Translations under genes and position numbers: made by a program
Notes under the pieces: generated by a model
What the model was told of the DNA's origin: nothing
Database searches by the model: none
What the model saw: only the letters and a program-made list of their open reading frames with translations
Assembly (NCBI GenBank): GCA_964247055.1
Contig: OZ176060.1
Span: 1,550,001 to 1,614,000 of the forward strand
DNA length: 64,000 bases
Reading direction: 5' to 3'
Source of the DNA: Paragordius varius
Taxonomy: Eukaryota > Animalia > Nematomorpha
Part shown: positions 16,535 through 63,436 of the stretch, piece by piece
Layout: the number at the start of each line of letters is the position of its first letter
Numbering within the stretch: the stretch's first letter is position 1

Positions 16535-16851
16535 GCAAGATTATCTTCAAGTTTTGATTAACTTTATGGAAAATCCGGACCAAAATAAGCAGCCAGAACA
16601 ACAGGACAATGAAACTTTACAAGATCTAGTAATGCATGACGTTGATTACTCATTTACGGATAGGCCAATTGGAATGACAAAAGAAGAATATGTTTCTAAT
16701 GCTATATTGTTTTTTGTGGCTGGCTATGAGTCTACCTCTAATGGATTATGTTACATTCTGCATAAATTAGCATGGTATCCTGATGTACAAAAAAAAATGC
16801 GAGAGGAAATCGAAGAAATGTGGCGGAAAAACAACCCAAAAATACCTTTTG
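16535..16851 (+). CDS. Cytochrome P450 (CYP3-clan-like), internal exon with the I-helix
   Basis: Acceptor TTTTAG at 16533-34 and donor GTAATA at 16852. Reads QDYLQVLINF...AILFFVAGYESTSNGLCYILHKLAWYPDVQKKMREEIE (AGxET/S I-helix). Ends in phase 1, matching the exon at 31494. Upstream exons were not found. Confidence 0.92.
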
Positions 16852-31493: not shown

Positions 31494-31755
31494 ATCTTAA
31501 AGATCCATTACTGATTGAGAAGTTGCCTTATGACGATATGATGGAGCTGAAGTATATGGACCAAGTTATTAAGGAGGTATTCCGTATGCACCCCCCTGTG
31601 TTATTTTTTGATAGAATTGCTTCACAAGATTATGAATTAGGTGATTTTTTAATAAAAAAAGGTACGATTCTCCAAATTCCTACCGAGGTGGTTCACCGAA
31701 ACCCGCTATATTGGAAGGATCCTCAGATCTTCAGACCAGAGAGATTTATAGATGA
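31494..31755 (+). CDS. Cytochrome P450 exon with the K-helix ExxR and PERF motifs
   Basis: Acceptor TATCAG at 31491-93 joins the previous exon in frame (PKIPF-D-LKDPLL). Reads LKYMDQVIKEVFRMHPP...HRNPLYWKDPQIFRPERFID. Confidence 0.93.
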
Positions 31756-31780
31756 GTATTAATAATTATGTTATTTTTAG
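31756..31780 (+). other. Predicted 25-nt GT-AG micro-intron
   Basis: GTATTAATAATTATGTTATTTTTAG contains the in-frame TAA. Removing it joins PERFID to DVKDKQYGYIPFG in frame. Confidence 0.75.
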
Positions 31781-32024
31781 TGTTAAGGATAAGCAATATG
31801 GATATATCCCATTTGGGATGGGCCCCAGAAATTGTGTGGGAATGAGATTTTCATATTTAGAAATGAAAGTTACTTTGTCTGTCATGTTTCTATCAAAATT
31901 ATCGTTCAAACCAGCTAAAGGAGATATGCATCAAGAACAAACTTATCAAAATACAATATTTAAAATGAACACCAACAATATACCGAAGTATGGCCTGCAA
32001 GTGGAGTTTGATATTTTAAAATAA
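31781..32024 (+). CDS. Cytochrome P450 terminal exon with the heme-binding motif
   Basis: YIPFGMGPRNCVGMRFSYLEMKVTL (FxxGxRxCxG), with stop TAA at 32022-24. Confidence 0.93.
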
Positions 32025-37189: not shown

Positions 37190-39540
37190 ATACATCCCAT
37201 GAAGATACCCCCCACAATATATATCGAGAAAAGTAGATGCTACACCATTCGCTCTATAGTTTTGTTGATATCAAGAAGGCATTCGATCTGATAGACAGGG
37301 ATCATATTGTCAGCTTTCTCGACACCTTAAATATGGATGAAAATTTCAAAAATTTTATGGTACACCTTATCACTCGGACATGGTGTCGAGTCAGCCTCGA
37401 GAACGCTAGGTCGGACACCCCACAAGAGGTCTTATACAGGGATGCCCGCTCCCCTAAACTGTTAACTTAACAATCATGAAAATCATTTATAACCTTTATG
37501 CTCTATTCAATAATAAATTCTTCCACATCCTATGTTATGCGGAACACCTATGCATCATTACGGACTCAGAGGATCTGCTGCAATCAGCGCTTAACAACCT
37601 ACAGCACGAGCTACATAAGATAAATTTATCAATAAACTTCTCCAAAATCAAACCAATGGTGACGGGAGAATGCAACAGGCCGTCACTATCCCTAGACTAT
37701 GGCAACATTGAGGTTAGCAAATTTCGCTACTTGGGTATTGAGATAGTCAATCAGGGCTGGTGGAATGTTGCCCATTAGATTAAGCATGGCGAACCTGATC
37801 TTTAACGGACTTGGCGGATTGCGGCAAATGAAAAAGGTAGGTCTCAAACTGAAACTGAAAATCTTCAAATGCTTTTATTCCCGCAGAACATATAACTTTT
37901 CAATATGGCGCACCTTCCATAAACGCCCTAAAAAACAGGTTTTTATAAATAAAGGCCTACGTTGCATCAGTCGAAAAATTCTCAACTACCACCTGCTACC
38001 TATACAAAAAAACAACATGCTTCCCATACGTTTTCCTCCAGCTGGTCTGAACATAGCTCATCAAATTCGGTATAATTCTATGAGCCCCTTGCGAGACTCA
38101 TTGAAATGGAAGTTGGACACTGGAAAACAAACGATCATGGTATTGAAGAATTGCGCTATTCATGAACCGCGTGAGATTATTCATAACACTGGACAACAAA
38201 TTTTTCTGCCACTCGAGTTTTTTGAATTTTCTGATATTTAGTATCATTTTAACAGTAAATCCGAAATAAAAATTATAACTCGTTGGAAGAATTTTGTATA
38301 ATTTGATTTATTTGATTATGCGCCCTCTTTATCAAAATTTTACTAAAAAATATTTTTCTTTGAAAATATTCAAGTAATGCCCATTTGTAATATATCATTC
38401 GAAAGAGTAATAAAAACTCTATAAAATGCATACTAATATGTATTACATCGACAGTTAATATATGACACAAAGAGCGACAAACGCGCGAAACGAGAGCATT
38501 TTTTTTAATTATTATATTTTTAAAACTACTGGATGAAAATATCTCGAACTTTGTTTAGATGGTGATGAATATCCAAAAAAGATAACACAAGAAAGTTTTT
38601 TTGATTAAACCATTTTTTTATTGCTATTATGTCACTCAAAACAACCATTCTTAAGTTTTTTGTTTTTTAAAAATTACCATCTCATCAATATTAATTTTTT
38701 TTCTTTATAAGGCCGATAATTTCGAAATTTTAAAGATAAAAACAAAGTTTAAGGTATTTTTGATCTTTTATAGCCATTATGTAATAAATTTACAGTTATA
38801 ACTATGCATTTTAGTATCCACTAGGTAAAATATTTATGATAATAATAATTTTTATTAAAAAAGCAAACCAAAAGCTTTTTCAAACATTTTTTTTTAATTA
38901 AGTACTAATATAACCCTAATAACTATATTAAAATAATTATGATTTTCAAATTAGTTTGTTTGTGAAAATTCGTGACTTATTAAGGATTGAAAATTACCAT
39001 TTAAATCCAAATAACTTTTACATCCGATTGATTTAAATGACTTACTACCATTTAAAAGATGCAGTATTTTGCGCTCTTTCGAATGATATAAAATAAATGG
39101 CTTCATATCTAAAACTTTTAATTTTCGAAATTTCGAGTTTAATGTTAAATCGGGGCCAAAAATTATCGATAAACTCTAATATAAAAAAATTCTTGAATGC
39201 TAGACCAATTCTCTTTTCAGATATACTAATTCTGTACTTTAATGAAATAAATTTTGAATTTAGAATGGCTGTTAAAAAAGTTAAAATTTGTTGTCTAGTG
39301 TAATAGATTCGTGGATGGACCTGAAACTATGTGAGAGGGAAAATAAAGAAGGAACTTATCGAAGAAGAAATCGTGTTATATAAAGACAAAAGAGAACGAA
39401 AGCGCCGGCGCCTGGAGCGAGCTAGAGCGCGAAAACGGGAGGCTAGAAGAAGTGCAGCCAACAGGAATTCCCGACAATTACCCATAGCACACTGACCCTA
39501 AGGATAGGCCTACAAGCAGTGACACACCTACAACCTAATG
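37190..39540 (+). mobile_element. Decayed non-LTR retrotransposon RT, split by the element at 38187-39300
   Basis: LYSFVDIKKAFDLIDR and ILCYAEHLCII (degenerate YADD) in ORFs 37237-37470 and 37476-37778. GC-richer sequence resumes after 39303. Confidence 0.8.
38187..39300 (+). mobile_element. Non-autonomous CAC-terminated DNA transposon (CMC/Chapaev3-like), 1114 bp
   Basis: TIRs CACTGGACAACAAATTTT / AAAATTTGTTGTCTAGTG and a 3-bp TSD TAA (38184-86, 39301-03). A highly similar copy lies at 57728-60311. Confidence 0.88.
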
Positions 39541-42950: not shown

Positions 42951-43876
42951 TTATTTTTTCATTAATACTATTGTTGTAGTCCACAGGTTTAGGTGATAAA
43001 TCTTGAGATCTCTCTCTTTCTCTTGAATCCAATCTAAGGGTTGACTTTCAAGACTGTTGTTGGATGAACGCCTTGTTTGAAACATTATATGGGAAGCGGA
43101 AAGCGGCTTTCCCAATCCAATTGTTTTGTATGTTCCATCACTCATATTATTGCTATTAATTGGGGTTTCGCTCATTATGGGGCTTGACTCTATAATTGAA
43201 GCTTTTTGCCTATCTAATTTATTTACATTTGTTTTACGAAAATGATAGATAATAACAATAAAAACTGTGGTTGTGCAGATCGATGCAAAAACAATGATTC
43301 CAATCAACATCCAAAGCATTGGTGTTGTCTTAAACACATTTCCAAGAGTATTTAAAGACCCGGATTTTGTGCTAAATAAAGTTTCAGACAAAGCTTGGGC
43401 CTTGATTTTGGCTTGTTTATTGGAATTTTTTGAGTTAATTTCAAGATCACGATTTTTTATAGAACGTCGGTTTCTCGTCAATCTCAGTTCCCCGGATTTT
43501 ATATAATCAATACGGGTAAGTGGAGGTGTATTCGAAGCAAAAAAATCGCCACTCGCAATCATATCTTCGGTGCAAGCAGATTGGTTTAATTCCGTGAAGA
43601 TGTTGTTACCTTCCATTTCTCTATACTGAAGAACATGGCTGGAGCAGTCGAATATTTGTGGTAAATTAATTACGTCTTCCAAGGTTACTAGTGTGTGTTG
43701 AGTTACGTCATTTGATTTAACATTGAGACGCAGTAGATCTCGCCTTAACATGTTGGAATCTTTTAACATAGCTTTAACATCCATACCACTACAAATAAAA
43801 TTAGGTTCAATTTTATCGCCTTGTTTGGTCATAGCACATCGACAAGGTTTGCGATCCTTGAATATGGTACAAAATC
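42951..43876 (-). CDS. Membrane-protein gene, terminal exon: Cys repeat 5, RNRR site, TM helix, cytoplasmic tail
   Basis: Acceptor TTTTTAG at 43878-77, phase 1 (G-FCTIFKDRKPCRCAMTKQ). TM segment MLWMLIGIIVFASICTTTVFIVIIY is followed by HFRK. Stop at 42953-51. Confidence 0.88.
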
Positions 43877-44554
43877 CTAAAAATAATTATTTTTTATATA
43901 TATATATATATATATATTTATGGCCACAAAACACCTTCTGTAAAAATTAATTTTTCAATTAAATGAGAATAGATTATACAGCAAATGTGATTAATAATAG
44001 TGTTTATATATATACTTCAATCCTATTATTAATTGTAATAGCGGAATATTTGTGCTATCGGTCATTAACTCATATGCGTTAATATATTATTGTTATAAAT
44101 GATTTTACAATATTTCTCTTCCATAATTTAAATTAAACAAACTAATAAAATTTAGCTCAGATATGCTAAATTAAAAATATCTATTTTGTTGTATAAAACA
44201 ATTTATAAAATATCATTCATAAGAATATTCTTTATTTGAATTTGTATTATTTAGGTTAATTAATCCAAGAAAAACTTCGTTTCCCTTTTTCTGGTTGTAG
44301 AGACATAGTAAAATTAGCGATGACCAAAAACTTTGGGTGAAATTAAAATGCTTGCAATCGTCAGCTACTATCAAAGGGTTTTAATTTATAAAACTGTTTA
44401 TGCTAAGTCAGGTAAAGGGCTTTTTTTACATACTTCATGTTATAAAGAGAATGATTAATAACATATTTATTGGTAGGTGACAACGCATATTTTATTTCAT
44501 ATAAATATAATAAACCATTTAAAACTTAATTTTTTTATAATAAAAAAAACATAC

Positions 44555-45023
44555 CATTTGTGTTAGTGGGACATGACTGAAGTCCTAAAGGTAACACAAA
44601 TTCAAGCGTAATGTTATTTTTTTTAATTGGTTTGAATGTTTGTAGCGACGAGCAATCTCCTATCTCGACATCCTTTGTGGTTGAATTCACTATAGTCCAT
44701 TGAGTATAATTTATTTCATGGAAATCAGTTGATATTTGAACCTTATGCAATTCAGTTTGAGCAACATTATATGTATCCATGACGGATGTTAAGTTTGAAC
44801 CTTGACATTCAAAATGAATACCCTTGCCTTGATGTTTTAGTTTGGTAATATCACATTTACAAGGACTATGTTTAGCATACATATCGCATAATGATTTATA
44901 TGTGCGCTTGCACGCATTAACTCCAACAGGAACTTTAACAACCAGTTCTCCCCCTTTGACAAATTCGGTGAAACTACTTGTATTTTGACAATACCCTAGC
45001 GGTTCTATCAGATGGTCCATTTG
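44555..45023 (-). CDS. Membrane-protein gene exon: end of repeat 3 and most of repeat 4
   Basis: Lies within ORF 44535-45029. Acceptor AATGAAG (phase 0, an AAG and so less certain) and donor GTATGT at 44554 (phase 1). Confidence 0.85.
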
Positions 45024-46179
45024 CTTCATTAATGTAAATAATTAAAATAAGTGTTAAAATAAAGCAAAAGACAAATAGCATCTAAAGACCCATGACGCTT
45101 TATGCGTATCAGACATATTTTTTATGTATATTATTCGTAATTATATCTGAATGAATTTTTTTTCGCTTATATTAATATTAAAGGAAAATTATTATATAAA
45201 AATGTTCCAGATAAAATAAAGTATATGTGATCATTATATACCATTTACTTTACTATCATAGGTTCAAAAATTTATATAAAATTCAAGCCAAGATGGGAAA
45301 ATCTTTTCAAATAAATAATTTGCATAGCCTCAAATTTAAATACAAATTGATCAACTTAAACAATTAACATACGGATATTATTAATTCAATGCGTATTTTT
45401 TTTATTTTTACTGGGGTTTTACAGGTCATAGATAATAACCGCGACTAGAACCATAAACGAAACGTTTTAAACACATGTCTATACGATATATGAAATTCCC
45501 GAATTCCCATATCGTTTTAAACTCGGTCTTAAAAATTTCAAATTTAATCTAAACATAAATTATATTTATGTAGTTTATTATAAAAAATATTTATTTTTGG
45601 CATTGTTTATTATTTCTAATATACGAATTTTGTTGAATTATTCATTTTGAGTCTGTTAAATTAAATTAGTCAAATACATTTTTATATCGCATTATCAAGA
45701 TTATATATTTAACGAGATATTGCTAAAACACCCTTCAAGGCAAACTATTCATAAAAAAATTAAGACACTTTATTTTATGATAATTAGCCATTAAAAATAA
45801 ACAAAAAAACAAATGACTACAAAATGGTATTATAAACAATTATTATCATCTAATAATTTATGAAACAAATAGTTTATACGGCCACCTATAATGTAGAAAT
45901 GATTTTCATTGGTGTCATTAACAAATTTATACTTCCAAGCCAGCAAAAATAGCAACCAAACTTAGTCATGATCCTAATTAACGAAATCTATCAATCAATA
46001 AAATAAGCGATTCTGGCTACAACGATAGAAAAATTGCAAAGATTTTAATTATGGATATATACCATAAAAAAGACCACTCCTCTCTCTTTATCAATTATTT
46101 ATTTGTTTTATTGTTGAAAAAGGGTTTTAGTCAGCTTAACTCTGACAACTTTTATATTTTATTATATTATAGGATATAC

Positions 46180-46345
46180 GGGAAATTCTAGTGTGGATTC
46201 AACAGACTCAAATTTTACGTCCCAATTCAAGATGGTTCTGAAATCGTTTTGAAGTTTATTATAGGCCTCAAGCATTTGTTTGGAATCAGTTCCATAACAT
46301 TGAATATCAACCATATTTTGTTGATGAGAATTTTTCATTACACAT
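46180..46345 (-). CDS. Membrane-protein gene exon: first half of repeat 3
   Basis: Acceptor CTAATAG (phase 2) and donor GTATAT (phase 0). Reads CVMKNSHQQNMVDIQCYGTDSKQMLEAYNKLQNDF...LEFP. Not in the ORF track. Confidence 0.82.
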
Positions 46346-47202
46346 CTATTAGATATATGATAAAATTACATTACATATTAATTAAATCCACCAGCAATTT
46401 TAAAATGATTAGTGTAATAACATTCTAAATGTGAAAATTTCCTATACTTTAGGTTTTTTATTTTAAATAATCCACCTTACACTATCTTTATTATTATTTA
46501 TTGATAGTAGCGTATGGTGTAAAGTTGACTTTTTGATTAGATATGGTACGATTCGACCGGTAATGAATGCGATTGATGTTCACAATAATGCCCGATTAAA
46601 AACGTAAATAGCCAATTTTTTATCATTGTTATTGGTAAAAATGATTTAAATATTTTATTAGAAAAATTCAAAATTTTTGTTAATTATAAATATTTTACGC
46701 GAGACTGATCAAACCCAACCCGGTATGAGATGTATTATGGTCGGCTTTATGAGTAAAAAGTACGGCAAAACGCAGTTTTGCATCAATATGTATTTGTTGA
46801 AATGAAATAAATTATATTAATGGTTTTGCTGTCAAATAAATCGTGTAAGTTAACACATCTACCTCCTATATAACTGTTAAAATATGCTATTTTATTTTCC
46901 TTAAAATATATCTATAAAAGCTTTCTTACTAAAATATATATGTATACAAATCCCTGAAGTGTTATTGTCTTAGGAGTTTAAATTAAATATATATATATTT
47001 AACACTTATAGTTGCAAGGAATAATACATCAGATTTTCATTTTTAAAATTATTTAGTTAAACTATAATCTAATTCTAAAGTTTTTGTAAAAATGTCTAAA
47101 ATTTATCTTGTGCGGCTTCTATATATATAGAAAAATATTTTTATATAGGAAAAAATAAGCGTTATTATTAAAATTTTTATTTGATTATTAGATATGCTGT
47201 AT

Positions 47203-48482
47203 CAGAAGTGGCTACGTAGACCGCGGTCGATTTCGTGCCCACGAGATTCCAAAACTTGCCCGCCTGAAAATTATTTAAAAAATAAAAAAAATATTTTCGC
47301 ATGGAATTTTCCCACAAAATAATGATTTAGAAAAAAGATTTTCACCCAAAAAATAAACTTGAAGATAATGCCATTTTTTTATCATGTCCGTATTGATGTG
47401 GAAGATATAGCGAAAAAACTCAACCTTTTTGAGATTGAATATTTACGAGATTCGGAGGAAGATATATATTAATTGCGACATTTGTAAATTATTAGCATTA
47501 GAGAATATATAAAATTTATAAATGAAGATAAATAATATAAGATTGCTGCACTTTTCATTTTTTTGCCACATATTTATGTGAATCGGTTTTTTTTATAAGA
47601 ATGTCATTAAAAGTAAACAGAGATCACGATTAAGTGATATACATTTGGAATCTTGCCTGAGGATTGCACTGAATTCATATGAACCTAATTTGAAAATCTG
47701 AAATTATGGCAAATCTCCTTAAATATTTAAACAAATCAAGTATTCCCACATTCCAAATGTTTATCAGTTAACTTAGATTTCTGAATTATTCTGCACCCAA
47801 ATTTGGCAAATTTTCAATTAAAGAAAATGGTGAGTATTTTAATTTTACATTTAACGGAGATAACATAGCAGTGCGAGATTAAATATTGTCAAAAATATTT
47901 TCTCAAAATGATTAATTAGGAAAGCAATATCATCGGCATTTTTAAAATAGATTATGTCATATTAGAAAAATGTTATAAATCATTGTTTTTTAATTGATTT
48001 GCAATGTGCAATAGAAATTATATCAAAAAGCAAGATGATTTTACATTTGTGGATATGAAAAATTTTTCAAAAATAGAGATATTCGTGATAAAAATTGTAG
48101 TAATCCTTCTATGAATGCACCACGATATAACCATCTTACATCTGTCTCTTGTTCACATGCCAACAGCGATTCCATTTACTATACTTAAAACTACGGCCCG
48201 ACACTTTCTATTTGATGAAATATTTTATCTTCAAGCATACTTATAGTTGCATAATCCATAAAATCTAATAAATTATATCATTGTGCTAAGAACTACAAAT
48301 TCATTTTTTACATTAATCATCTAAACTCCGTCACAAGATGTACAATTAATTATCCTCTATAAATTTAATAAATTGAATAATGTAAATGTTCTAGTATGTA
48401 ATGATTGACAAACAAAGGTCTTCTGAATCATCGAAATAGTATTTTAATAAAATTAAGATTTTAAAAAGGTTGGCCACCCCTG
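47203..48482 (-). mobile_element. hAT deletion derivative in an intron
   Basis: Termini CAGAAGTGGCTAC / GTTGGCCACCCCTG with subterminal GACCGCGGTCGA. The minus strand reads ESLLACEQETDVRWLYRG (hAT TEVRWLSRG). About 48000-48420 is homologous to about 49870-50280. Confidence 0.8.
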
Positions 48483-48820
48483 GTATATATATCCATTTCG
48501 ATTATTGAATTTATATAATAATCTTTAATTTAATGCATAACTTTCATCAATTTTTTAAGAATTAACCATCCACGCTTTCCTTTTGTTTTATTTAATAAAC
48601 ACAAGGCTTTAATGTTTAAATTCTTTAGAATTTTTTATTAAAAAAAGCATGACAAAGTTCAAAGCGATATTAATGTTTTGGGCAGGTCCATAAAGTTATT
48701 AATTTATATTATCCATTTGTAGTAAAATTAATATTAATTTTAATAAACATTTTAGTTTTATGCAAACACTATATTATACCTGATTTTACGACACTAAGAA
48801 TAATATTTAAAATCCAATAC

Positions 48821-49002
48821 TTGCAAGGATAGTCATGCGAATGTTTTTGACACTTTTCCATTAGTGTAGTTTCTTTAGAATTGCAAATAGATGCTTTGTA
48901 CGGAATTAAAACAATAACTTCTTTAGCCGGCCCTGAATGAAGTTGAAGTGCTTTTCTATTTTCACAATCGACAAAATTTACCGCTCCATCCATTAATCTA
49001 TT
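48821..49002 (-). CDS. Membrane-protein gene exon: second half of repeat 2
   Basis: Acceptor TTTTTATAG (phase 0) and donor GTATTG (phase 2). Reads NRLMDGAVNFVDC...IPYKASICNSKETTLMEKCQKHSHDYPC. Confidence 0.85.
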
Positions 49003-50339
49003 CTATAAAAATATTAGGTTAAATACATTTAGAATTCCAAATTATAATGTGATTAAGTGAATTGAACTTTGTTTGTAATTTAAAAATAAATTTATAATTA
49101 TTACAAACAAATTTTAAATCAGGGAAACTATCTGTACAAATATTTATCATATATGGGTGGCCAAACGGTCGACCGCGGTCGACTTCGTAACCACTTGAAA
49201 TTAAAATATTTTCCTCCATAAAATATATAATTTATTTTTTCCAATTTATTTTTATTTTATGTTTAAAAAAATTCTTGTTAACAAAATATTTATAATTCAT
49301 TAACAGTTTAAATTTAGCAAAACAAAGCAGGTATTACCAAACTTATATTTTAAAATTAAAAATGGAAGCAAGTAAATGCTAATATATATTGTTATAGAAT
49401 TGACTCAGAAGAAAAATATAATTGAATATTAATAATAGTACTTGTTTGATATGCAATTTTACTGTGGCTTTGCCTAAAACAGCAAATGTCTAAACAAAGT
49501 TTACTACGCTTTATTAAAAAATACAGTACAGATATTCTCAATTTAAAAAAGCTATTGAAATAACCACCAGAAGCTGAGAAATACTGCAGAAATAAAAAAA
49601 TCATAATTGCAACTTACAAAATATCAGTCCTATTACAAAACACTAAATCTTTTCAGGACAAAAAAAGGGTTTATTATAGCTTAAGTTCTATTGAAAAAAA
49701 GACAAAAAATATTATGAATTAAAAAAGGCTTAGAAACACAATTATGTGGAGAGGTAATGATCCTCAAAATTTTACAGAAATTTTACATATTTTTAAATGC
49801 AGACGTCACAGAAATATGCTTCGAATTACTGTTTTTTAATTAATTTGCAGTTTACAATTTTTCTGTGATAACACATCAAAAAGGATGATTAGGAAGCGTT
49901 AGATCCATTTGTGGATATGAATAATTTTTCTAAAATAAATATATTTGTGATAAAAATTTTCTTAATCATTCTATGAATGCAGCGCGACATACTTATATCT
50001 GTATCCTATTCACAATGCCAACAGCAATTCCATTTACTAAACTTAAGACTGCAGCCCGACACTCTTTTGATTTGATTAATTTTACTATCTTCAAGTATAC
50101 TTATTTATAAGCTATGCATAATCCATATAATCTAATAAAATAGATCATTGTTTAGAAATTCATTTTTTGCTCAATCATCTAAAATGTCACAAGATGTACA
50201 GTTAATTATCCAATGTAAATTTAAAATGTATAGTGTAAATGTTTTAGTAATTCTAGTGATTGTGGCAACCGAAGGTTTTTTGAAAACATTTTTTGAATGA
50301 TTATATATAAAATAACTACTAAAAAAAATTATTTTTCAA

Positions 50340-50661
50340 TATTATTATAGCTGTAACTTACATTTATTACCACATCGTTTCGAAAGAAATTAATTGCTTA
50401 TTTGCATGAACGTTTTATGTATTATTATATTAGGGAGAAAAACCTTGATCAACGTTTTTAGAATTATTATATTATTGAATAAATTGTATACTTGCAGGCA
50501 CTCTCCCTCTATGAATTCTAATATATTTATACATCATTAAGTTACGCATATATGTACCAGTACGAATATATATATATATATATATATATATATTGATATA
50601 CTTCGCACCTTGTATTTTTGAATACAATAAATATATCCTTTAAAAGTGATCCCATCTTACA
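50340..50661 (+). repeat. 5' LTR, containing (TA)n and followed by a TGG PBS-like start
   Basis: GTAACTTACATTTATTACCAC and TTGCATGAACGTTTTATGT blocks are shared with 53976-54311. It ends CCATCTTACA. Confidence 0.85.
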
Positions 50662-53600
50662 TTGGTTAAGACACAACGACGGAAAACCAATGAACATAGT
50701 AGCTTCAACCGCTATTGCCAAAGTATCCATAAAAAATAAAACAAAAACATCGATCGTTTACAATATGGTTACAACAATAAGAATATCAATCTTTAAATGC
50801 CTACCGACAACCAATGGCAAAAACGTCGACAGCATGCAGGCACTGTGGCAACACGGACGCGCCCAACAAATGTCCAGCAAACGGACGTGCAAAAAGTGTA
50901 GTATACTTAATCAATTCGCAAGGATGTGCCTAGCCAAAAGACAGAAACCTAATTTTTATCGAAACTGTTGAAGGATATAACCGTATGGCCAAACTAGCTC
51001 AACCGTTGGTTGTAAAAATAATAATAAGAAGCCGGATGAATTAATTTATTTACTACACCGGTTCAGATATCAGTGTGAACTTTGCAACATAGCATCAAGT
51101 GGGCAAGGTGAAATTCCGCCCGACACCTCCGCTCAAATCGTACAATAAGACCACAGTGATGGGCATCCCAACCATGAACTTGGAGATAAACTGTAAACAA
51201 ATGACGGGGGGCATGTGTCCTGAGTAAACAAATGGGGATGGCACCACTTATCTGTGTATTATACTGGGCGGCCAAATTCCAAATTAAGATGCTACAGGTT
51301 AAAGTATATTATTTTATAAATTAAATTTGCGCATATTTTAGGAACTTATTCGAAAATAAGCTAAGATGTTATAAAGACCCAGTAAAAATTCGCATTGCAG
51401 CGAATGCCCAGAAAATATGGCCATGTCGCAGGTGCATTTTCCATTAAGAGAAAAGGTGAAAGAGCTGACGAAGCCAAAAGGTTAGGCATCCTAAAACCGG
51501 TCGATCCTAACAGTACACCTGTGACATGGGCCAAGTCTAAGGTTAATGTAATTAAACCGAATGAACAGCTAATAATATGCAGTGACCTTCGAGTGACGAT
51601 TAATAAGTGGTTCGAAGAAGACTCTCATATACCACGTTTGATGAGTTGGTGTCAAAATAGGCGAAGGTCTAACATTTACCGAAATTGACCTAAAAGAGCG
51701 TACCTCCAGATGCCAATGGCAGAGGAGCAAGAATTATCCATTTCGACAGATACAGTTTTTTTATATAAACGCATGCCGTTTGGACTGGCCACGGCACCCA
51801 TCATTTTTCAACGGCTGATGGAACAGATGCTAGCCGACAGTCCGGGAACCTGTGTGTATTTGGATAACATTTTAGTGACTGGTAAGAACGGAAAGTGAAC
51901 ACATTAACAATTTAATAAGGTATTCGTCTCAATAAGCCCGGATTCTAATCAAGACAAGATAAAATAATAATAGGTGCAGAATTAGTGAGCTATTTGGCGT
52001 TTGCAATATCGTAAAAGGGTATAAGCCCGAAAAGCAAAATCAAGGTAATTAGGGAATTAAAAAGACCTGTTGATAAAAAGTCGTTACGTAGTTTTTTAGG
52101 ATTTCAGACGTTTTATCAACGTTTTATACCAAAATTACAATTGATAGTCGGTCCCTTAGATGAATTAACATATAAAAATACAAATTGGTCTTGGACCGAG
52201 AAACATGAAAAAAGCTGGGTAGCAACTAATATTTGTTAAGCAAAAAAGTCTTTTCACCATATAATCCTAATAGGAAATAGATACGGATGCGGGGTGCATT
52301 TTAAGTCATGAGGTTGATAATGAAAGGGTACCGATCGCGTATGCCTCGCAAACCATCGCCGAACGGAACTACTCCACTATCGAGTAAGAATTGAAAGAAA
52401 TATTGTTTTTTCTAAGAAAGTTTCAAAGTTTTGTGTATATTAGAAAATTGAATATTAACCGATCATTTACCACAAGTAAAATTACTAGAGATCGAAACTT
52501 AAAAGAAATTAATGCTAAAGTGCTTTGAAGGATCAATAAAACAAATGAATACGATTTTGAAATAAGTCACTAAAAAGGGGCTCAAAATGGAGCCGATTAT
52601 TTATGATGGCTGATTTAAAGATCGATGCCTGTGACAAAGATTATGCGTACCCGATACCTGTGATTTTAAAATTGCTATAACGTGCGGTTAAGCAGAGACG
52701 AAATTCGGAGAGAAACCGCGTTGATACGGTATTACAAAAATGATTAAAGCGTTAAACAACCATGACTGAAGTCCAGAACTAGAGAAGTTTGTTACCCGTA
52801 ATGACGAATGGGCATATCAATATGGCTTGTTAAATTTAAATCAACGGAATATAATTACGAAACCCTGCAAAAGGAGGTGGTGAGATACCTACACAGCGGT
52901 CATAACAACGTAGAAACCATGAAAGCAATGGCCAGATTTACGTGTTATTGGCCAAAATTAAAAAACGACCTGGTAAAACAGTAGTCAGTGCGAACTGTGC
53001 CAACGTAGTACGAAATGGGTACGAGCAAAACGTTGCTGTGTGGGAGCGTTTGCATTTTGAAGCCGGACCGGTAGACGGTTAGTTTTGGTTGTTGATAATC
53101 GATAGCGCCGCTAAATGGGCAGAAAAATTTATTAAACGCGAATGTAATCCATAAACTAAAAGAAACTTTTGCAAGGTTTGGTTTTGCAGGAGAGATAATT
53201 AGCGACGCATTGTATTTTAACAATGATTACTTTATACGTCAACCTTAAGTAAGTTAGGGTCAGACATATTAAAGTTACCCCTACCATCCTAAAAGTAATG
53301 GGATGTTAGAAAGGTTAGTAGGTACGATAAAATAAATACAAGAGAATAAAAAATAGTGCGATATCTACACACGAAGCTTTTTACACTAGCTTATGGGCGC
53401 ATAGAAACTCTATACACTCGACATCGACAACTAAAGAAACTTCGTCTCAATTAATGTTCAAGCGAACACCCCATACCCCCTTAACCTGGTTAAATAATAG
53501 GGTGAGATTGTTAGATGCACCGGCCCCTCGACGTCAGTTTCTGATTAATCCAGTAATGATCAAAAATGAACTAAGTCCAGGTTGACACGCCGGTGAGATC

Positions 53601-53975
53601 ACGGACCGTAGGTTATTGTCAAACAAGGTGTGGGACAAAGACCGGGAGAAACTCGTGAGAAAACACGTTGATCAACTCATACACCATCACGCAGCAATCC
53701 ACCATATCAAGTAACACAATACTTTAGCCACAACAGCAACCAACCACATCAAGCAATACAAGTGATGAGGATGTAACCACTGGGGACGATGTTATAACAG
53801 CCAAATCTCGACCAAACAGCCCGATTCAATGACGAAACCGAATCGATTACCCAGACAACCACAAGCCTAAACAATAATAATACCCAGGAACCACCGACAA
53901 CCAGCTCCCTCACAAAAATACAAGAAAGACGGTACCCAACAAATATTCAAAACCCGTGCGCTAAGAAGGGGGTAG

Positions 53976-54197
53976 TGTTGTTATAATGGTAACTTACATT
54001 TATTACCACCAAGTGTAAGAGGTTAATAGCTCTATTGCATGAACGTTTTATGTCGTATATTAGTGAATAACCTCGCAACCAACGTTTTTAGTATTATCAT
54101 ATTATGAATATTGTTTAGTTGCAGGAATTTTACCTTTATGAATTTGAAATTTATAGATGATTAAGCTACGCATATATATATACCAGCTAATCTTTTG

Positions 54198-54250
<53 letters not shown>

Positions 54251-54311
54251 ATATTTCCATTGAATTTTTGATAACAATAAATATCTCCTTTACGTGTGGC
54301 GCCATTTTACA
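53976..54311 (+). repeat. 3' LTR (TG...CA), containing (TA)n
   Basis: Starts TGTTGTTATAA directly after the PPT and ends CCATTTTACA. It is visibly diverged from the 5' LTR. Confidence 0.85.
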
Positions 54312-54611
54312 GTAATATTTATTTTGAAATAGCCTGTGCTAGTCACCCCTATCGGTAATTTGAGATATATATTTACATCATTTGTGTTGAGATAATAAAT
54401 GCGTAAAATTTTCTGCCAAAAAAGTAGTCCCTGGGAAAAAAGGTTGGCTACCCTTGAATTTCTAATACTAATGGTTAAATAAAAAAGCATTTAAACTAAA
54501 TCATTTAAGCTATTTTCTATCAAAATATAGATTATATTAATTGTTTGCATTATATTATATATAAAGTAGGTGATGTTTAAGTAGAACTGAATATGTAATG
54601 TTAAAACTAAC

Positions 54612-54780
54612 TTCGAAAATTAGTTGTATAGTGGTTATAGCGCACTCTAAGCTAGTTTTGGCAGATGTGATTTGGAAAAGACTAGTGCGAATATCATAAA
54701 AATGTGCCAACATGATGGTATAATTATTGCCAGAACATACAATCGTAACTATGGGAGGTTTATAAGCTTCACGTTTACAT
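54612..54780 (-). CDS. Membrane-protein gene exon: first half of repeat 2
   Basis: Acceptor TTTTTTAG (phase 2) and donor GTTAGT (phase 0). Reads CKREAYKPPIVTIVCSGNNYTIMLAHFYD...QLIFE. Not in the ORF track. Confidence 0.82.
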
Positions 54781-54946
54781 CTAAAAAATAATTTAGTGAC
54801 TAATCATTTATTATAAGCAATCTTATAAAAATAGTTGAATGCAATTTTTTGGGTTTAAAGCACTTTTTGCGATTCGAATCACCATTCAAATCGAACCTAT
54901 TATCTAATATAAAGAAAGCGAAATTTCATAGCAAACAAAACGGAAC

Positions 54947-55119
54947 CTGCAAGGTTGATATTCACTATATTTGATACATTGAATAAGTAATGGATCTTCA
55001 CAAACTTCCCGTCCAATAGGAATGTATAATATGCCTGAATTGTCCATATTTCTTATAACAGGGTAAGGGGTTAAAGTGTTACAGTCGACTAATAAATTTC
55101 CGGAAATAGCGAAGATATT
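54947..55119 (-). CDS. Membrane-protein gene exon: second half of repeat 1
   Basis: Acceptor AATTATAG (phase 0) and donor GTTCCG (phase 2, weak). Reads NIFAISGNLLVDC...LYIPIGREVCEDPLLIQCIKYSEYQPC. Confidence 0.8.
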
Positions 55120-55188
55120 CTATAATTAATGTCTCATTTATATCGATAATATTAGAATAGGTAAATATATTAAGTTTAAATCCCATAC

Positions 55189-55354
55189 TTTTATAATTAT
55201 GGAAATTGACCAAATTCCGTTAATATTGTGAAAGATTACAACTTGATTCATTTTTTCAATGATCATGTTGATTGTTAAAAGGAATATGCGAATATCATCG
55301 ATCCCACAAACTAATTGTATCTGATTCTCTAATAATAACTTATGTTTGTCGCAC
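55189..55354 (-). CDS. Membrane-protein gene exon: first half of repeat 1
   Basis: Acceptor TTTTTTAG (phase 2) and donor GTATGG (phase 0), followed by a 69-nt intron. Reads CDKHKLLLENQIQLVCGIDD...WSISIIIK. Confidence 0.8.
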
Positions 55355-56559
55355 CTAAAAAATGTTAGACATAGAATCTTGTTGTAAATTAATTAATATA
55401 ATATGGTAGTCGGCCTTGTCACCCATCTTTGTGATTAAACTTCGATTTATATTGGGATATCTAGGGAATCCGGACTATATTAAAGTTGATATATTTAAAT
55501 ACTATTGAAAAAAAACAATTCCAATTTAAATTTATGTGTCTATCCTAATAAAAAATATATAAATATGCCAAAATATCTAAATAAAATTAAAAAAAAAATT
55601 CCAACTACTGCGGCGCCATTTTTATTTTACAAAATTTTGCAAAATATCGTGTTTATTATATTGTAACGCTAAAATTAAAACTTTTTATTAAAATCGCATG
55701 TTAATATAAACAGACAAAGTTCCTTATTTTGCATTTATATTTACCTAATGCACATATGTCATGTTGAAATTTTCATCTTTGGGTTTTTCCATAAAAGTAT
55801 TATCTAATTGTTTATTAATCTTTTTATATATTTCGGTGCATTATTTTTTTAATTTTTAATTTAAAACAGGCCCGGGGTATCGACCCCAATTCGAATCGAA
55901 GGGCTATGAATCTGTTGTCATAAAGGGTTAAGTAGGAACGATACTAATAATTTGTAATAAACAGTTATTTTCTCATATTTTTCTAATTGATTTGATTTGA
56001 AATGGAATTCTAATAATTATCGTTTGCTGACGTTTGCATCGAATTATAAACTTAATAATATACTATTATTGTTGAAAAATAATTTATTTTCATGTGTTAT
56101 TTTTGCTATGGGACAATATCGAAAAAATTTCGGAATGTTTTGAATTTTAATAGCAGGAAAAACAATACAAAACAATCAAATCGATAGTTAGGATAAAACT
56201 TGTTATTTAAGCTAAACCTATATACTATATAAGGGGAACCAAAAGGTAAGAAACAAAACTAGCCCGACCAAACTCAATTTTTAGCAGTACCCGAATATTT
56301 CTCATGAAAATAATTATTAACCTTAGCAAGAAATTGCACCCATAAAGATATGTCAACAAGTAAAAACTCATTCATAAAAACAAAAGAGCCATGACTTTGA
56401 GACGTTTAAGCTCCAATTTTCAAATTTATTATTGAATCAAAATTGCAATGTATAGTATAAGAGTCCTAGTATGATTATAAACATTAGTTACGATTTTTAT
56501 TTTAATAAGATTAAAAAATATTTTATCCAAAATAAAAAATGTTAAACGACGTGTTCGAT

Positions 56560-56900
56560 TTCATACCGATAAATATAGCATCCAGACTAGGATTAACACC
56601 GTAGATAAGTGGGAAAAAGCAATAGAAGTTATTTATTACATATAACAAACTGCGTCAGATTAACACTTAACATAGCTTTGTTCCAGTCGGGGCTTTACCG
56701 AGGAATATCTGCCTTTACTGATCGCATTAATAGATTTGAAACAAGGACAACCATGGGAAGTGATGTATACAGACTACATCGTCCTTAGAGCAACATTAAC
56801 AGAATGTAATAAATAAAAATTCAAGACATAGAAATCACGACTGGAAAGAATGGAATGAATATAAATCTGGAAAGACAAAAGTCGAGTGTGAAATATTTAT
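56560..56900 (+). mobile_element. Short RTE-like RT fragment
   Basis: LLIALIDLKQGQPWEVMYTDYIVL resembles the RTE PW.MLFADDIVL motif. Confidence 0.6.
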
Positions 56901-57647
56901 AAACACTTAATTTTCCATGGGTTTATGTTATTTGAATTGAATTAATTATAGACTAAAATAATTAATGCGTCCCGCAAAGTTTGTATTGTTCTAAAATATA
57001 TAAAGCGGCAATTTCGATTTTTTCCTAATTATTTTTCTCAAAAATCCATATTTACTTATAAAATTAAATAATGATGTAAATTTTGGTTAAAACTCCTTTA
57101 ACTTCAATACCTTTTGGGGTTTTGTATCCCAGAGCGATTTGAAATATGAATACATTTAAAGCTATTTAATGTATTAAGCCAAATTAAAAATATGCTTTCT
57201 TTTGCCTCTTAGGCGCATTATTTTTTTATAAAATTTAAACTCATTTCAAACTTTTTTGCCGCCATTTTATTTACCATTATTTTTTTAAATCGCTAATGCA
57301 ACAGGCAAATATATGTATATTATGATTAATGTAAAAAATATCTTTAAAAAACTTTCAGATTACATTTCACCAGCAAATACCTGATATATTTAGATTTATA
57401 TAAACTGATCGTTTCAATCGTGTTTTGGAGCTGTCCCGATTTTAGACTCTACAAGTCAAAAACCGTAAAAAATATAAGCTATTTTATCTAAAACATGAGA
57501 AAAATGTTTGATAATTAAATTTGAAAAGAATTTTTATGACTTCAGTTACTTTACAAAATTGAGCTATGCGATATAAAAATATTCCAACAACTCAGGACAA
57601 AAACTAATTTTATTCAACAACTAATATAGCAATTTAGCAACACTTAC

Positions 57648-57702
57648 GTGCAATTCTGTGATATTTTTTCTTCTTCACAGATGTTTGAAACTGTTATGTT
57701 CT
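57648..57702 (-). CDS. Membrane-protein gene, 55-nt exon: start of repeat 1
   Basis: Acceptor TTATTTAG (phase 1) and perfect donor GTAAGT (phase 2). E-NITVSNICEEEKISQNC-T supplies the C-x8-C before xCD of the next exon. Confidence 0.82.
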
Positions 57703-57727
57703 CTAAATAAAATATAGTATTGCATTA

Positions 57728-60311
57728 CACTGGACAGCAAATTTTTCTGACACTCGAGTTTTTTGCATTTTCGATTAATATAACAGTAAATCTGAAAAAA
57801 AATTATAACTCGATGAAAGAATTTCGTTTAATTTGATTTTTTTGATTATGCGCCCTCTTTATCAAAATTTTACTAAAAAATGTTTTTCTTTAAAAATATA
57901 CAAGTAATGCCCATTTGTAATATATCATTCGAAAGAGTAATAAAAACTCTATAATATGCATACTAATATGTATTACATCGACAGTTAATATTGGACACAA
58001 AGAGCGACAAACGCGCGAAGCGAGAACATTTTTTTAAATATTATATTTCTAAAACTAAGGGATGTAAATTAATGTGACCAGATAGGCTGTGTTTCGCAAT
58101 ACAGTACTGGGTTTTCAGAAAAAAACTGCGCATGTACTGCACCCACTTTTGTACTGCTTTTTGAAATTAAAAAAAATAGTTATTTATAAATACATATCAA
58201 TTACCCTTTGTTTATTCAAAAAAATAATGTTAGAACTTAATATAGTACCCTCTGTAATAACCCCATAATTTGTAAAGAAATGGTTCGTTTTGCGGTAAAA
58301 TACTATTGACCTTTTTTTAATTGGTTAATATTTTATTTTCTGCTCGAATCATACATAAAACTTAAGATTGCAGCCTTTCGCGCAGTGCGAAACTATAAAT
58401 CTCGGACTCAATATTCAGGGACTTCTGAAAAAATAGGTTCCTTAACATTTAAAATTAACAAAATCTAAAATATTTTAATAAATGTTTGATCAAATTTAGA
58501 AAGTTCATTTTTTGTTATAAGTATCAAACGGAAAATATAAAAATTCGTTATTCCCATAACATATTATATAAAATTTATTATATATGGCATATGTTTTGAA
58601 ATAACATTTTTTCGTATTAAAAAATTTAGTTTTTACGTTTTCTATATTCATTAGGTGGGAGGTATGATTTTACTTAGTTTTTTTCCTCCACTTTAATTTT
58701 TATTAGTTTTCTTATTTTTTTGCATAAACAAATTTGAGATATTTTATTGAAGCGTACTTCTAACGATTTTGAAGCATGATGGAAACAGTATAACACTTTA
58801 AGATATAATAAATCCCTTTTTCCAAATAATTCGATGATGCTGAACATTACTATAGGTTCATATTTTTAATTTAAAGGTTTTGCTTGCAAATTTTGGTAAA
58901 TTTTTTAATAAAATACAATTTTTATTATAAATTTGAAAACGAACGAATATTCTAACAAAATTTTGATTGAGAATCAGCATTATCGAATTATATATATAAA
59001 ATGTTATAACATCTCAACCGTTTATATCGTTTCCATCGTCTTAAAAATAATATGAAGTACGCTTGAACAAAATTTGCTTAAAATTAAATTTTTGAAAGTG
59101 TGCATTTTTTAAAAAAATATTTAGTTGATATCAAAGTTTAGTATATATTTAAAATTATTGCACAATAATGGAATTTTTGCTTTTAAGCAAACATCTAAAA
59201 TTTTAAATTTTAAAAATATATTTTGCTTTTTATATGTAGTTTATGTTATATTTTAGTGATATTTTTGAAATAAAACATTTAGCTTTCACCAAAAAATATA
59301 TTTGAAAAAATTTCGCACATTTTGCAATTTTAAACGGAGCACCTACCACAAAGTGTAAATAACTTTCTTTAATAACTCGTAAAGGTTAAATTCAAAACCA
59401 TGATAATCCTGATATTTTCCTATTAGAATATATATATTTCATCAGGATATTTTTTCGTAACTGTGTAATATACCACATCGATGGTATAAAAACAAGCAAA
59501 GTATGTTTTAATTTTGTACTGCGTCCATATTCAAAATATCTGGTCACATTAATGTAAATAGCTCAAACTTTGTTTAGATGGTGATGAATGTCCAAAAAAG
59601 ATAACATAAGAAAGTTTTTTTGATTAAAACATTTTTTTATTGCTTTTATGTCACTCAAAACAGCCATTTTTAAGTTTTTTGTTTTTTAAAAATTACCATC
59701 TCATCTATATCAATTTATTTTCTTGACGAGGCTGATAATTTCGAAATTTTAAAGATTAAAACAAAGTTTAAGGTATTTTTGATCTTTTATAGCCATTATG
59801 TAATAAATTTACAGTTATAACTATGCATTTTAGTATCCACTAGGTAAATTATTTATGATAATAATAATTTTTATTAAAAAAGGAAACCAAAAGCTTTTTC
59901 AAACATTTTTTTAAATTAAATACTACTTAATAATTATATTAAAATAATTTATATGATTTTCAAATTAGTTTGTCAGTGAAAATTCTTGACTTATTTAAGG
60001 ATTGAAAATTACCATTTAAATCCAAATAACTTTTACATCCGATTGATTTAAATGACTTACTACCATTTAAAAGATGCAGTATTTTGCGCTCTTTCGAATG
60101 ATATAAAATAAATGGCTTCATATCTAAAACTTTTAATTTTCGAAATTTCGAGTTTAATGTTAAATCGGGGCCAAAAATTATCGATAAACTCTAATATAAA
60201 AAAATTCTTGAATGCTAGACCAATTCTCTTTTCAGATATACTAATTCTGTACTTTAATGAAATATTGAATTTAGAATGGCAGTTAAAAAAATTAAAATTT
60301 GATGTCTAGTG
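57728..60311 (+). mobile_element. Second copy of the CAC-terminated (Chapaev3-like) element, split by a nested insertion
   Basis: CACTGGACAGCAAATTTT...AAAATTTGATGTCTAGTG with TSD TTA (57725-27, 60312-14). It is colinear with 38187-39300 once 58070-59551 is removed. Confidence 0.9.
58070..59551. mobile_element. Non-autonomous hAT-like element, 1482 bp, with an 8-bp TSD
   Basis: TIRs TAATGTGACCAGATA / TATCTGGTCACATTA. ATGTAAAT occurs at 58062-69 and 59552-59, and the insertion is absent from the 38187 copy. Confidence 0.85.
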
Positions 60312-60331
60312 TTATATAAAGTAGAGAAAAC

Positions 60332-60418
60332 CTTTGCACTTGCATAAATAGCAGTTTGATCTGGTATCAAAAATGTAACCAAGTTGACATAGGTTTTTAC
60401 ATGGCATTGTGCACATAT
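60332..60418 (-). CDS. Membrane-protein gene exon: antistasin-like domain 2
   Basis: Phase 1-1 exon (acceptor CCCTAG, donor GTTTTC). MCTMPCKNLCQLGYIFDTRSNCYLCKCK fits C-x3-C-x3-C-x2-G-Y-x2-D-x4-C-x2-C-x-C. Confidence 0.83.
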
Positions 60419-62166
60419 CTAGGGATTAATTAAAATCATTACAATTAAACCTCTTTTGTGCGACTGCTTTGGGCAGTCTTTACCTCTGTGTGAATACTAA
60501 TTAACATACCGTCTAAACCTTTTTCCGCTTATACATTGTTTTAAACATATAAATTTTTTTATTCATATATTATTTTAGATATTTAAAACAACATTGGTAT
60601 AAAAAAACTTTTTTATATAGTTTGCTAGCGTGTCTAGAGCCGTCATATTTGATTTCATTAACTTTGTAAGATTTTTTGTTTTATTGATCATGGTAATTGT
60701 AAATATCTTATTGAGTCAAAATACCATTTTATTTTTTGTGAGGTATGTTTTTAACTAAAGAAGTTTGGTTAAATCTAAATTTAAATACCACTAATTTCTC
60801 TAAATAACCTAAAAAATATTTAGAATCCATTTATAAATTTTTGTTCAACTTACATTGTAACACAAAACTAAGAATCGTCTTGTGTTTGAAGTTTTTATTT
60901 TTATAATCCGATTTGCGATTTTGTTAAATATTATTTTGTAAGAAGTTTAAGGTTTAATAATTTTTAAATCTATTAATAAACACAACCTTTATCATGTTTT
61001 TCGATCCACCATTAATCTTTAAGAAAGGCGTTTAAATCATATCTGAATTAAACAAACATCAATACGCTGTTTTAATTTATTTTAATCAAATAGTTATATA
61101 AAAATTCACAATAAGATAAAGAAACAGCATATTTTAAAGATTTAAGCTATGGTAAAATAACAAAAGTGTGTTTTAAGTAGAATGATTAATCAACTTATAT
61201 ATTCTAGGTACCTGGCTCAATAATTAAAAACTAGAATATTATATTTTTAACTTAACTGGCATTTAGTTTAAAAAACTTCAATACATGCATAGTGTATTGG
61301 TTTTTATCTTTTTGGTGCCTTATTTCATAATTTTTGTTGAAAATGATAAATCAGTAGGATTCGAATTGGTGGGCAAAAAATTTTACATTCATAAGGAAAA
61401 GACTTGACTTAAGTGTTTTTTTCCAATCTTCTAGTGTAATTGCCACGCACTTGCAACACGAGTGTGACTTTTTTATCACCACACCCTTGATAAATAACAC
61501 CTTAATGAATATCACTTTAATGAATATTATTAAAACATATTTTAGGCCACATAAAATTACACTCTGTGGAAAGAATGGGTTTAAAAGCCAAAATGACACC
61601 AATATTCAATTACAGTTTTTGGATATAAAAATGCGTTGAATGGTATAAAAAAGTATTTATAATATGTATTGGTGGTAAAGGAAAAATTATATGCCATTTC
61701 CCCTTTGTAAATTAATATTTTCTTTTTTTATATGAGGATTAATCATTTTTTAACACGATATATTTGGGTACACTTTATACATATATATATGGTAAATATA
61801 TGATATTAAAATAAATAACTATTAAATTTAATTAAAAGTTTGGAGAGGTTTAAATTTGAGGCCATCTGAAAAAAATGAAAGTGCAATAAATAATTTTTTG
61901 TTTCTGACTAAGAATAAGTTATTTTTTAGTATTTTAAAGAAATGATGTATTATTTTACAATTATTTGTGGGTATAGTTTTAGATAAGAAATGATTTTTTA
62001 GCATGTAAAAATTGGTATAAATTACATTTAAATAGTCAATAATTTTAAATAATTATAAATACCCAATCTCTTTACGAGTTCAATTTAATATAATAAATAT
62101 ATTGCATCATCATAAAATAGTGATTAACAAAAATAAGCAAAATAAAAAATTTTAAGAATGATATAC

Positions 62167-62256
62167 TTGGTGGTAAACATTCACAAGTTTGGCATTGAAA
62201 ATGGTCCATTTTGAAGCCATAGAGACAGGTGTTGACGCAAACAGGAGGTATGCATG
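62167..62256 (-). CDS. Membrane-protein gene exon: antistasin-like domain 1
   Basis: Phase 1-1 exon (acceptor TGTTTAG, donor GTATAT). Reads CIPPVCVNTCLYGFKMDHFQCQTCECLPP. Confidence 0.85.
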
Positions 62257-62371
62257 CTAAACAATAAAAATAAAGATTATTTGTATGTGAGAATTGCTAA
62301 AAGATTAGTGTTATTGAAAAAATTCAATTTTATGAAATATTTTAACGTAAATGAATGGTTGATAAAAATAC

Positions 62372-63436
62372 TTTTGGTAATAGATGTAGTTGAAAGCATT
62401 TTTAAGATATTTTCGCTACTTTTTATATTATCGGTTGGTATAAAACCAGTCATATTTATATGCTCGTTTATGGTAGATGTTAATAAGTTTGTTGTTGTTT
62501 CAAATTTAGTTGTTGTATGGGTTAAGTTATTATAGGGAGTAGTAATATTTAGGGTTTCATTATTTAAAGGGGTTGATTTAATTGTTGTTGTGATATTTGA
62601 AGATTTTGCTATAGATGTAGTAAATATATTTTGCCTAGAACTATGGGTATTAGAGGTGTTGTAATCTGAGTGTCCAGTTAATGTTATGTTTTCCTCAATG
62701 GTCGTTAAAAGTGTTGTAGGAGAAGAGGTTGATGATACAGACCGCTCACTTGATACTGTAGGAGAAGTTACATTATTCATCGTATTTGCGGAAACAGTAG
62801 TTATTAAAAGAGTTGTATTTAAAATTCGAGTGGTTAAACTAGATGCATTGAAAGGCGTGGTTGTATAAGTTGCATTTTTACTAATTCCCTCGCTAATTGT
62901 GATAGAGGGATTTGAGTTTAATGTAGTGGTTATGGTGTGCGGTGTTAATGGAGTCGTTGTAATAGTAACTTCTGGTTTAAAAGGACTAGAGTGATTTAGT
63001 GTCACTTTCGGAATCGTTAAATTTATTCCAGGTGTTGTAGTGTTTTCAATTATTTTAAAAAATCCAGTAATGCTGGAATTTTCGTTGATTGTTGTTGTAG
63101 GGACAGACAATGTACTGCCCTGACTTACATTAAACCTATTTTTACCGGTGGGTGTGGGATTATATGAACTAATATTAGTGACAAAATAGCCTGTAACGTT
63201 AACTTGTTCGCTTATGGTAGAGTGTGTTTGCCCATTCGTCGTATTTTGTTCTTTAGGTGTTCGTAGAGTTGACTTTTCCCCATTATTAGTTTCGTTGTTA
63301 AACTGTAGAGGGGTGATTGAACTTGTTTTAAAAGTTGATATAGTACTATGATTGTTTGGAGGAACTGTGGTGACTTTTAAGGGTGTAAGTCCTGAAGGGG
63401 TGTTTAGCTCTACGATAAGAGAAATGCTGGTAGATT
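62372..63436 (-). CDS. Membrane-protein gene exon: Thr/Ser-rich mucin-like region, 355 codons
   Basis: The frame is open from acceptor AACTAG (63438-37) to donor GTATTT (62371), phase 1-1, extending ORF 62277-63110 upstream. I count about 21 N-x-S/T sequons by eye. Confidence 0.85.

Follow-up and report, generated by a model that had tools for sequence, protein, structure and literature searches.

What kind of protein is encoded on the minus strand near the end of this stretch of Paragordius varius DNA, and how much of its gene does the stretch hold? The window, meaning the whole stretch analysed, is 64,000 nucleotides long (contig OZ176060.1 of assembly GCA_964247055.1, positions 1,550,001 to 1,614,000). 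An original prediction, made from the letters alone, had placed in it a type I membrane protein of ~1180 residues with a mucin-like segment, antistasin modules, five cysteine-rich repeats and a transmembrane segment. The exon model was confirmed. We consider it somewhat likely that the locus is an intact, single-copy horsehair worm (Nematomorpha) gene for a large type I membrane glycoprotein, and the 11 exons in the window are most likely its 3' two thirds.

These exons (E1 to E11) occupy 42954-63436 on the minus strand, in DNA that is very AT-rich (about 25% GC). All introns are GT..AG and all phases agree; no stop codon occurs inside an exon or at a split codon, and the chain amounts to ~1182 codons counted from 63436. 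The interval of the original prediction, 42951-63436, begins with the stop codon and ends at the E1 acceptor. The parts are given below in the order of the protein, with identities to CAK9291521.1, a protein from Gordionus.

62372-63436, minus strand: E1, mucin-like, Ser/Thr/Asn-rich, about 355 codons (phase 1 in, 1 out)
62167-62256, minus strand: E2, antistasin-type six-cysteine module (phase 1-1 exon)
60332-60418, minus strand: E3, second antistasin-like six-cysteine module (phase 1-1 exon)
57648-57702, minus strand: E4, 55 nt, carrying the final two cysteines of a truncated first half-repeat (phase 1 in, 2 out)
55189-55354, minus strand: E5, second half of repeat 1 (65% identity to residues 2-53)
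54947-55119, minus strand: E6, first half of repeat 2 (67% identity to residues 54-110, junctions exact)
54612-54780, minus strand: E7, second half of repeat 2 (59% identity to residues 112-167)
48821-49002, minus strand: E8, first half of repeat 3 (45% identity to residues 168-227)
46180-46345, minus strand: E9, second half of repeat 3 (38% identity to residues 229-283)
44555-45023, minus strand: E10, complete repeat 4 and first part of repeat 5 (60% identity to residues 284-438)
42954-43876, minus strand: E11, remainder of repeat 5, two-cysteine stub, stalk, membrane span and tail (43% identity to residues 441-694)
42951-42953, minus strand: stop codon TAA

The 11 GT-AG exons had been proposed to form one uninterrupted frame, with seven of them missing from the list of open reading frames (ORFs). 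Both statements held: the default list has a minimum of 60 aa and contains E1, E8, E10 and E11 only. Open frames of 357, 156 and 307 codons are well above chance expectation at this base composition. GC content is 28-42% in the exons and 19-27% in the introns, except for intron 7 (33%), which has a retrotransposon inside it. Within its short open frame E4 has a single AG acceptor, and it ends with the same phase-2 split of a 'C-x-C' as E6 and E8. The joins E1-E2, E2-E3 and E3-E4 were made solely on phase, proximity and the lack of alternatives.

A profile built from the repeat copies was searched against 1.84 billion cluster representatives and returned one real relative, CAK9291521.1 (697 aa, E 2.7e-98). 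The other three matches were repetitive proteins and were rejected as relatives. Word searches with E11, E10 and CAK9291521.1 found only CAK9291521.1 itself. The entry, labelled 'unnamed protein product', comes from Gordionus sp. m RMFG-2023 and was predicted with BRAKER in the genome project on Gordionus montsenyensis (10.1101/2023.06.26.546503). It is colinear with E5-E11 at 38-67% identity and crosses all six junctions without indels; the per-exon blocks are contiguous, neighbours abutting or lying one split-codon residue apart. E5-E11 were therefore independently confirmed. Repeats, cysteines, stalk, membrane span and the exon junctions of E5-E11 are common to both proteins. Every comparable cysteine is conserved (28 of 28), and two have no partner: the first residue of E5, which lies ahead of the artificial start of CAK9291521.1, and one inside the membrane span. 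The Gordionus sequence differs in being an automatic model that starts within a domain, with neither a name nor the upstream half. Because it begins mid-domain and has no leader, it was taken to be truncated at its 5' end.

The repeat unit in this part of the protein is ~115 residues long, with the pattern C-x25/26-C-x7/10-C-x8-P-C-x-C-x13/16-C-x-G followed by about 45 residues. Five cysteine-rich repeats had been predicted; the array is real, and its composition is a partial copy 1, four full copies and a C-terminal two-cysteine stub instead of five clean units. Copies 1-3 have a phase-2 intron inside the 'C-x-C' and a phase-0 intron between units, and most of these introns have been lost from copies 4 and 5. 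Identity is about 20% between copies within one species versus 38-67% between orthologous copies, and the array therefore predates the split of the two worms.

No Pfam family matched the repeat (exons searched at E<=1, CAK9291521.1 at E<=10), and no match was obtained from the PDB with the CAK9291521.1 sequence or the repeat profile. In the ESM Atlas, E10 matched only sub-threshold viral-glycoprotein look-alikes, and the model of CAK9291521.1 held there is poor (predicted local distance difference test score, pLDDT, 0.36). A search of the P. varius genome with E10 and the repeat profile found this locus only, in a search that also overlooked the upstream copies described below. The domain combination had not been recognised in the original prediction, and the searches of Pfam and the PDB agree with that. 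As far as sequence comparison reaches, the ~115-residue repeat appears to be a domain found so far in hairworms only. It could alternatively be a much-diverged LRRNT/LRRCT cassette, which would make the protein a receptor of the leucine-rich repeat (LRR) type and the domain not new. By eye, the 'P-C-x-C ... hydrophobic-x-C-x-G' pattern and the ~25-residue loop between cysteines do look like such caps. This is very improbable, however: no LRRNT, LRR or LRRCT match was found in Pfam at the thresholds above, sequence and profile were both empty in the PDB, and the stretch between the caps, about 45 residues, has no LRR consensus.

Two features of E11 define the membrane end of the protein.

43464-43475, minus strand: Arg-Asn-Arg-Arg motif in the stalk, about 50 residues ahead of the membrane span
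43239-43319, minus strand: transmembrane segment of 27 residues (Kyte-Doolittle 19-mer mean 2.67), the single such segment in E11

The span is followed by Arg-Lys and then by a 95-residue tail, and CAK9291521.1 has a hydrophobic span at the equivalent position. The predicted membrane anchor was upheld on these three counts: one C-terminal hydrophobic span, basic residues after it, and a position kept in the second species. Arg-Asn-Arg-Arg aligns with Gln-Lys-Arg of CAK9291521.1 and is possibly a conserved convertase cleavage site, at which the ectodomain would be released.

At the other end of the window model, the E1 open frame (357 codons) encodes 37% Ser+Thr, 12% Asn, 6% Pro and no cysteine. 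It contains 21 NxS/T sequons, against 14.5+/-2.9 in shuffles. Tandem Repeats Finder, run on the DNA of 62372-63436, found no tandem repeat, and a genome-wide check found no further copies, so that E1 is unique. The description of this segment as a mucin stands for its Ser/Thr richness and its density of sequons; tandem repeats are missing, and Pro reaches just 6%.

The two small exons after E1 had been assigned the antistasin fold, and this assignment is sustained. E2 scored 22.2 bits against Pfam PF02822 (cut-off 21.2) and 26 bits in a genome scan, and its best PDB match was antistasin, 1SKZ, in both domains (antistasin residues 33-53 and 88-110). E3 scored 13.6 bits, under the same cut-off, and gave zero matches in the PDB. 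With cysteine spacings of 4,3,10,2,1 (E2) and 3,3,11,2,1 (E3), both modules fit the antistasin core motif, C-x3/4-C-x3-C-x10/11-C-x2-C-x-C with Gly and Asp in the long loop, and the conserved Gly and Asp are present. What they contain is this six-cysteine core and not the ten-cysteine inhibitor domain, as the N-terminal four-cysteine subdomain is absent: E2 and E3 have exactly six cysteines each, E1, which precedes E2, is cysteine-free, and E3 follows directly after E2 in the model. The known reactive-site arginine of antistasin, residue 34, comes after the second cysteine of the module. In the alignment to 1SKZ the residue at this position is Val in E2; going by the motif spacing, it would be Lys in E3. 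The modules may bind serine proteases.

Across the P. varius genome, at least 57 exon-sized PF02822 modules lie above the Pfam cut-off, many of them tightly clustered, and antistasin is therefore a common shuffled module here. Examples of clusters are C6:8491264-8495092, C6:5465183-5466963, C7:4197466-4240837 and C10:2452590-2459174. The clustering points to genes with several antistasin modules each or to a large family of shuffled exons.

E1 opens with an acceptor, and no signal peptide was found within the window. The upstream DNA was searched with half-repeat profiles, which found further copies of the orphan repeat on the same strand, 5' of the mucin exons. The scores were 9.3 (U4), 18.6 (U5) and 23.9 bits (U6), with none of 300 shuffles as high; E values for the upstream copies were 4e-5 and 1e-3 among 10,253 frames. 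Their intron phases are those of the array in the window, and they include a 66-nt intron, comparable with the 69-nt intron between E5 and E6. Ten exons in all (U1-U10, C11:1625327 down to 1615477) are GT..AG, in phase and stop-free. The chain begins at an ATG with a hydrophobic leader and ends in two more Ser/Thr-rich exons, the last of which opens with a short motif shared by E1.

C11:1625253-1625327, minus strand: candidate first exon (hydrophobic core; phase-0 donor, 85 nt from the next exon)

With these ten exons added, the gene most likely comprises about 1645 codons; the full model has 21 exons and 4935 nt. The predicted size of ~1180 residues was accordingly too small, and a second, N-terminal repeat set had been missed. 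That the start would lie beyond the window was correct, a candidate leader being present upstream. The upstream and E1 regions are unique in the genome and are thus not transposon-derived. Further out, C11:1633000-1640100 contains on both strands debris resembling non-LTR (long terminal repeat) retrotransposons (endonuclease- and reverse transcriptase-like frames, identified by eye); it begins about 8 kb upstream of the candidate first exon.

Whether the two halves of this model belong to one gene depends on the join of E3 to E4. Two adjacent genes could instead be present: one for a secreted repeat/mucin/antistasin glycoprotein that stops shortly after E3, the other for a separate membrane protein made from E4-E11. 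Several observations weigh against a single gene of the proposed kind, and some of them suit this alternative. What joins E3 to E4 is a phase match (a 1 in 3 chance) and the absence of alternatives; outside support is nil, the Gordionus annotation covering E5-E11 only. CAK9291521.1 starts inside E5 and is silent on the upstream half. If the E3 donor is left unused, the frame stops seven codons later, and the product could then be a secreted mucin with antistasin modules at its end; mucins that end in six-cysteine modules are a known design, as in Toxocara TES-120. Intron 3 is 2.6 kb long and has received two transposon insertions. Upstream, U1-U3, U7 and U8 are without homology support; the upstream exons gave no match when compared by BLASTP with E7, E8 and E9, U4-U6 were detected by profiles alone, and U7 was not significant. 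An AlphaFold2 model of repeat 4, computed with the paralogous copies aligned, was poor (pLDDT 54.8), and a Foldseek search of the PDB with it gave nothing; adding CAK9291521.1 to the repeat alignment gave no extra depth. Finally, the N-terminal four-cysteine part of characterised antistasin-type inhibitors is absent from the E2 and E3 modules.

For such a second gene, no first exons of its own were found. E4 begins in phase 1, has no ATG and has one possible acceptor, and a search between E3 and E4 for ATG exons that resemble a signal peptide and have a phase-1 donor found none. One tempting start was considered, an ATG at 58029 with a Cys-rich frame at 57731-57791, preceded by a strong acceptor, and a 28-nt GT..AG intron into E4; the occurrence of tiny introns in this genome spoke in its favour. 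It was ruled out, as the region belongs to an interspersed repeat present in hundreds of copies of ~92% identity. A neighbouring GC-rich island was rejected as another high-copy repeat.

57724-58058, unstranded: high-copy interspersed repeat of about 335 bp (at least 872 candidates, about 92% identity)
58066-58419, unstranded: second high-copy interspersed repeat of about 350 bp (at least 1126 candidates, 83-94% identity)

The two lie back to back and are not part of the protein. They account for the only GC-rich islands of intron 3 and its only tempting start: the end of the first lies about 20 nt from the E4 acceptor, and the ATG and Cys-rich frame inside this repeat mimic the beginning of a gene. 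The mid-domain, leaderless start of CAK9291521.1 is that of a truncated model. That the same orphan repeat flanks the mucin exons on both sides, on one strand, also speaks for a single gene. We regard one gene spanning both halves as likely, and two adjacent genes as rather unlikely.

The locus could also be a decaying or unexpressed relic, with open frames that no longer make protein. Lying so close to the E4 acceptor (about 20 nt), the first interspersed repeat of intron 3 could interfere with the branch site, and intron 7 contains a broken retrotransposon.

50500-54300, plus strand (antisense to the gene): broken LTR-type retrotransposon in intron 7 (RVT_1 34.7 bits, Integrase_H2C2 29.6 bits)

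Its reverse transcriptase and integrase zinc-binding domains are in separate short frames, and (AT)n arrays bound it (50566-50593 and 54200-54245). Against decay, all 21 proposed exons are open at about 25% GC with intact splice sites, and none of the 28 comparable cysteines has changed, although the two species share just 38-67% identity in this protein. Frames, splice sites and cysteines so preserved indicate purifying selection, and a relic is extremely improbable.

For the intact single gene, the following architecture is proposed. The protein would begin, beyond the window, with a signal-peptide-like start and about 95 unassigned residues, followed by a short first set of orphan repeats and a linker. 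A Ser/Thr/Asn-rich, sequon-dense stalk of about 440 residues would come next, then the two antistasin-type six-cysteine modules, then the partial, four full and stub copies of the ~115-residue repeat, and last the stalk with the dibasic motif, the membrane span and the ~95-residue tail. It would be a plasma-membrane protein, extracellular in all but its tail. The disulfide-braced repeats near the membrane may form a rigid array for binding or spacing, and the glycosylated, non-repetitive stalk in the middle of the ectodomain would carry the N-terminal modules out into the glycocalyx. The antistasin modules and the second short array would thus sit farther out from the membrane. Shedding of the ectodomain at the dibasic site is possible. 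Such a protein would most likely coat the worm epidermis or another epithelium, or act there in adhesion. The original reading, a receptor or coat that may display inhibitor-like domains, is a reasonable hypothesis. A bolder combination is improbable: that the repeat has a new extracellular fold which only hairworms possess, that the protein is a membrane-anchored, sheddable coat of the parasitic stage, and that it holds Lys- and Val-specific antistasin modules out into the insect blood, where they would block the serine-protease (melanisation) cascade of the host locally.

Parts of this design are found in known systems. The leech inhibitors antistasin and hirustasin (PF02822, MEROPS I15) share with E2 and E3 the six-cysteine core, Gly and Asp; they are small and secreted and have an extra four-cysteine part per domain, whereas the modules described here are phase-1 exons in a huge membrane protein. 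In the TES-120 surface-coat mucins of Toxocara canis, a mucin domain is flanked by six-cysteine SXC/ShK modules. These are also parasite glycoproteins, with paired small six-cysteine modules after a Ser/Thr-rich stalk. The TES-120 modules are SXC/ShK and not antistasin, however, and the proteins are small and secreted, with no membrane span or large repeats; the likeness is an analogy of design and not homology. Animal transmembrane mucins of the MUC1, MUC4 and MUC16 type similarly combine a long glycosylated stalk, one membrane span and a short tail. In the Pfam scan the present protein had no SEA, NIDO/AMOP/vWD or EGF domain, and its stalk has no tandem repeats and lies mid-ectodomain with Cys-rich arrays on either side. 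GP900 of Cryptosporidium parvum, a type I membrane glycoprotein of mucin-like character, undergoes cleavage in the secretory pathway and is shed (PMC9111948). It resembles the present protein as a single-pass parasite glycoprotein with mucin-like stretches, and the dibasic motif here would permit similar cleavage. The two are unrelated in sequence and differ in organism and cell biology, and for the present protein cleavage is a guess from the motif.

Elsewhere in the window, a cytochrome P450 gene was seen on the plus strand (16554-16868 and 31752-32024), spread over at least 15 kb. Just ahead of its heme-binding exon is a 25-nt GT..AG intron (31756-31780), and tiny introns are therefore not confined to gene starts here. 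An RVT_1 fragment (37476-38241, plus strand, 28.2 bits, just below the cut-off) lies between the P450 gene and the mucin gene.

Horsehair worms grow in the blood space of insects and absorb food through the body wall. To our knowledge, almost nothing is known of their surface molecules. The gene described here provides a concrete, conserved surface candidate: a membrane-tethered glycoprotein that combines a domain new to the databases with modules of an inhibitor family common in the genome. Automatic annotation misses much of such genes, as its sole public relative, unnamed and truncated, illustrates. Most economically, the protein is read as having a coat or adhesion function; a role in inhibiting proteases at the host interface would be more exciting and is unsupported. 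If the protein is on the parasite surface, it would be a starting point for asking how the worm evades the clotting and melanisation proteases of the insect, and if it is not, it would still offer a new cysteine-rich domain family for structural study.

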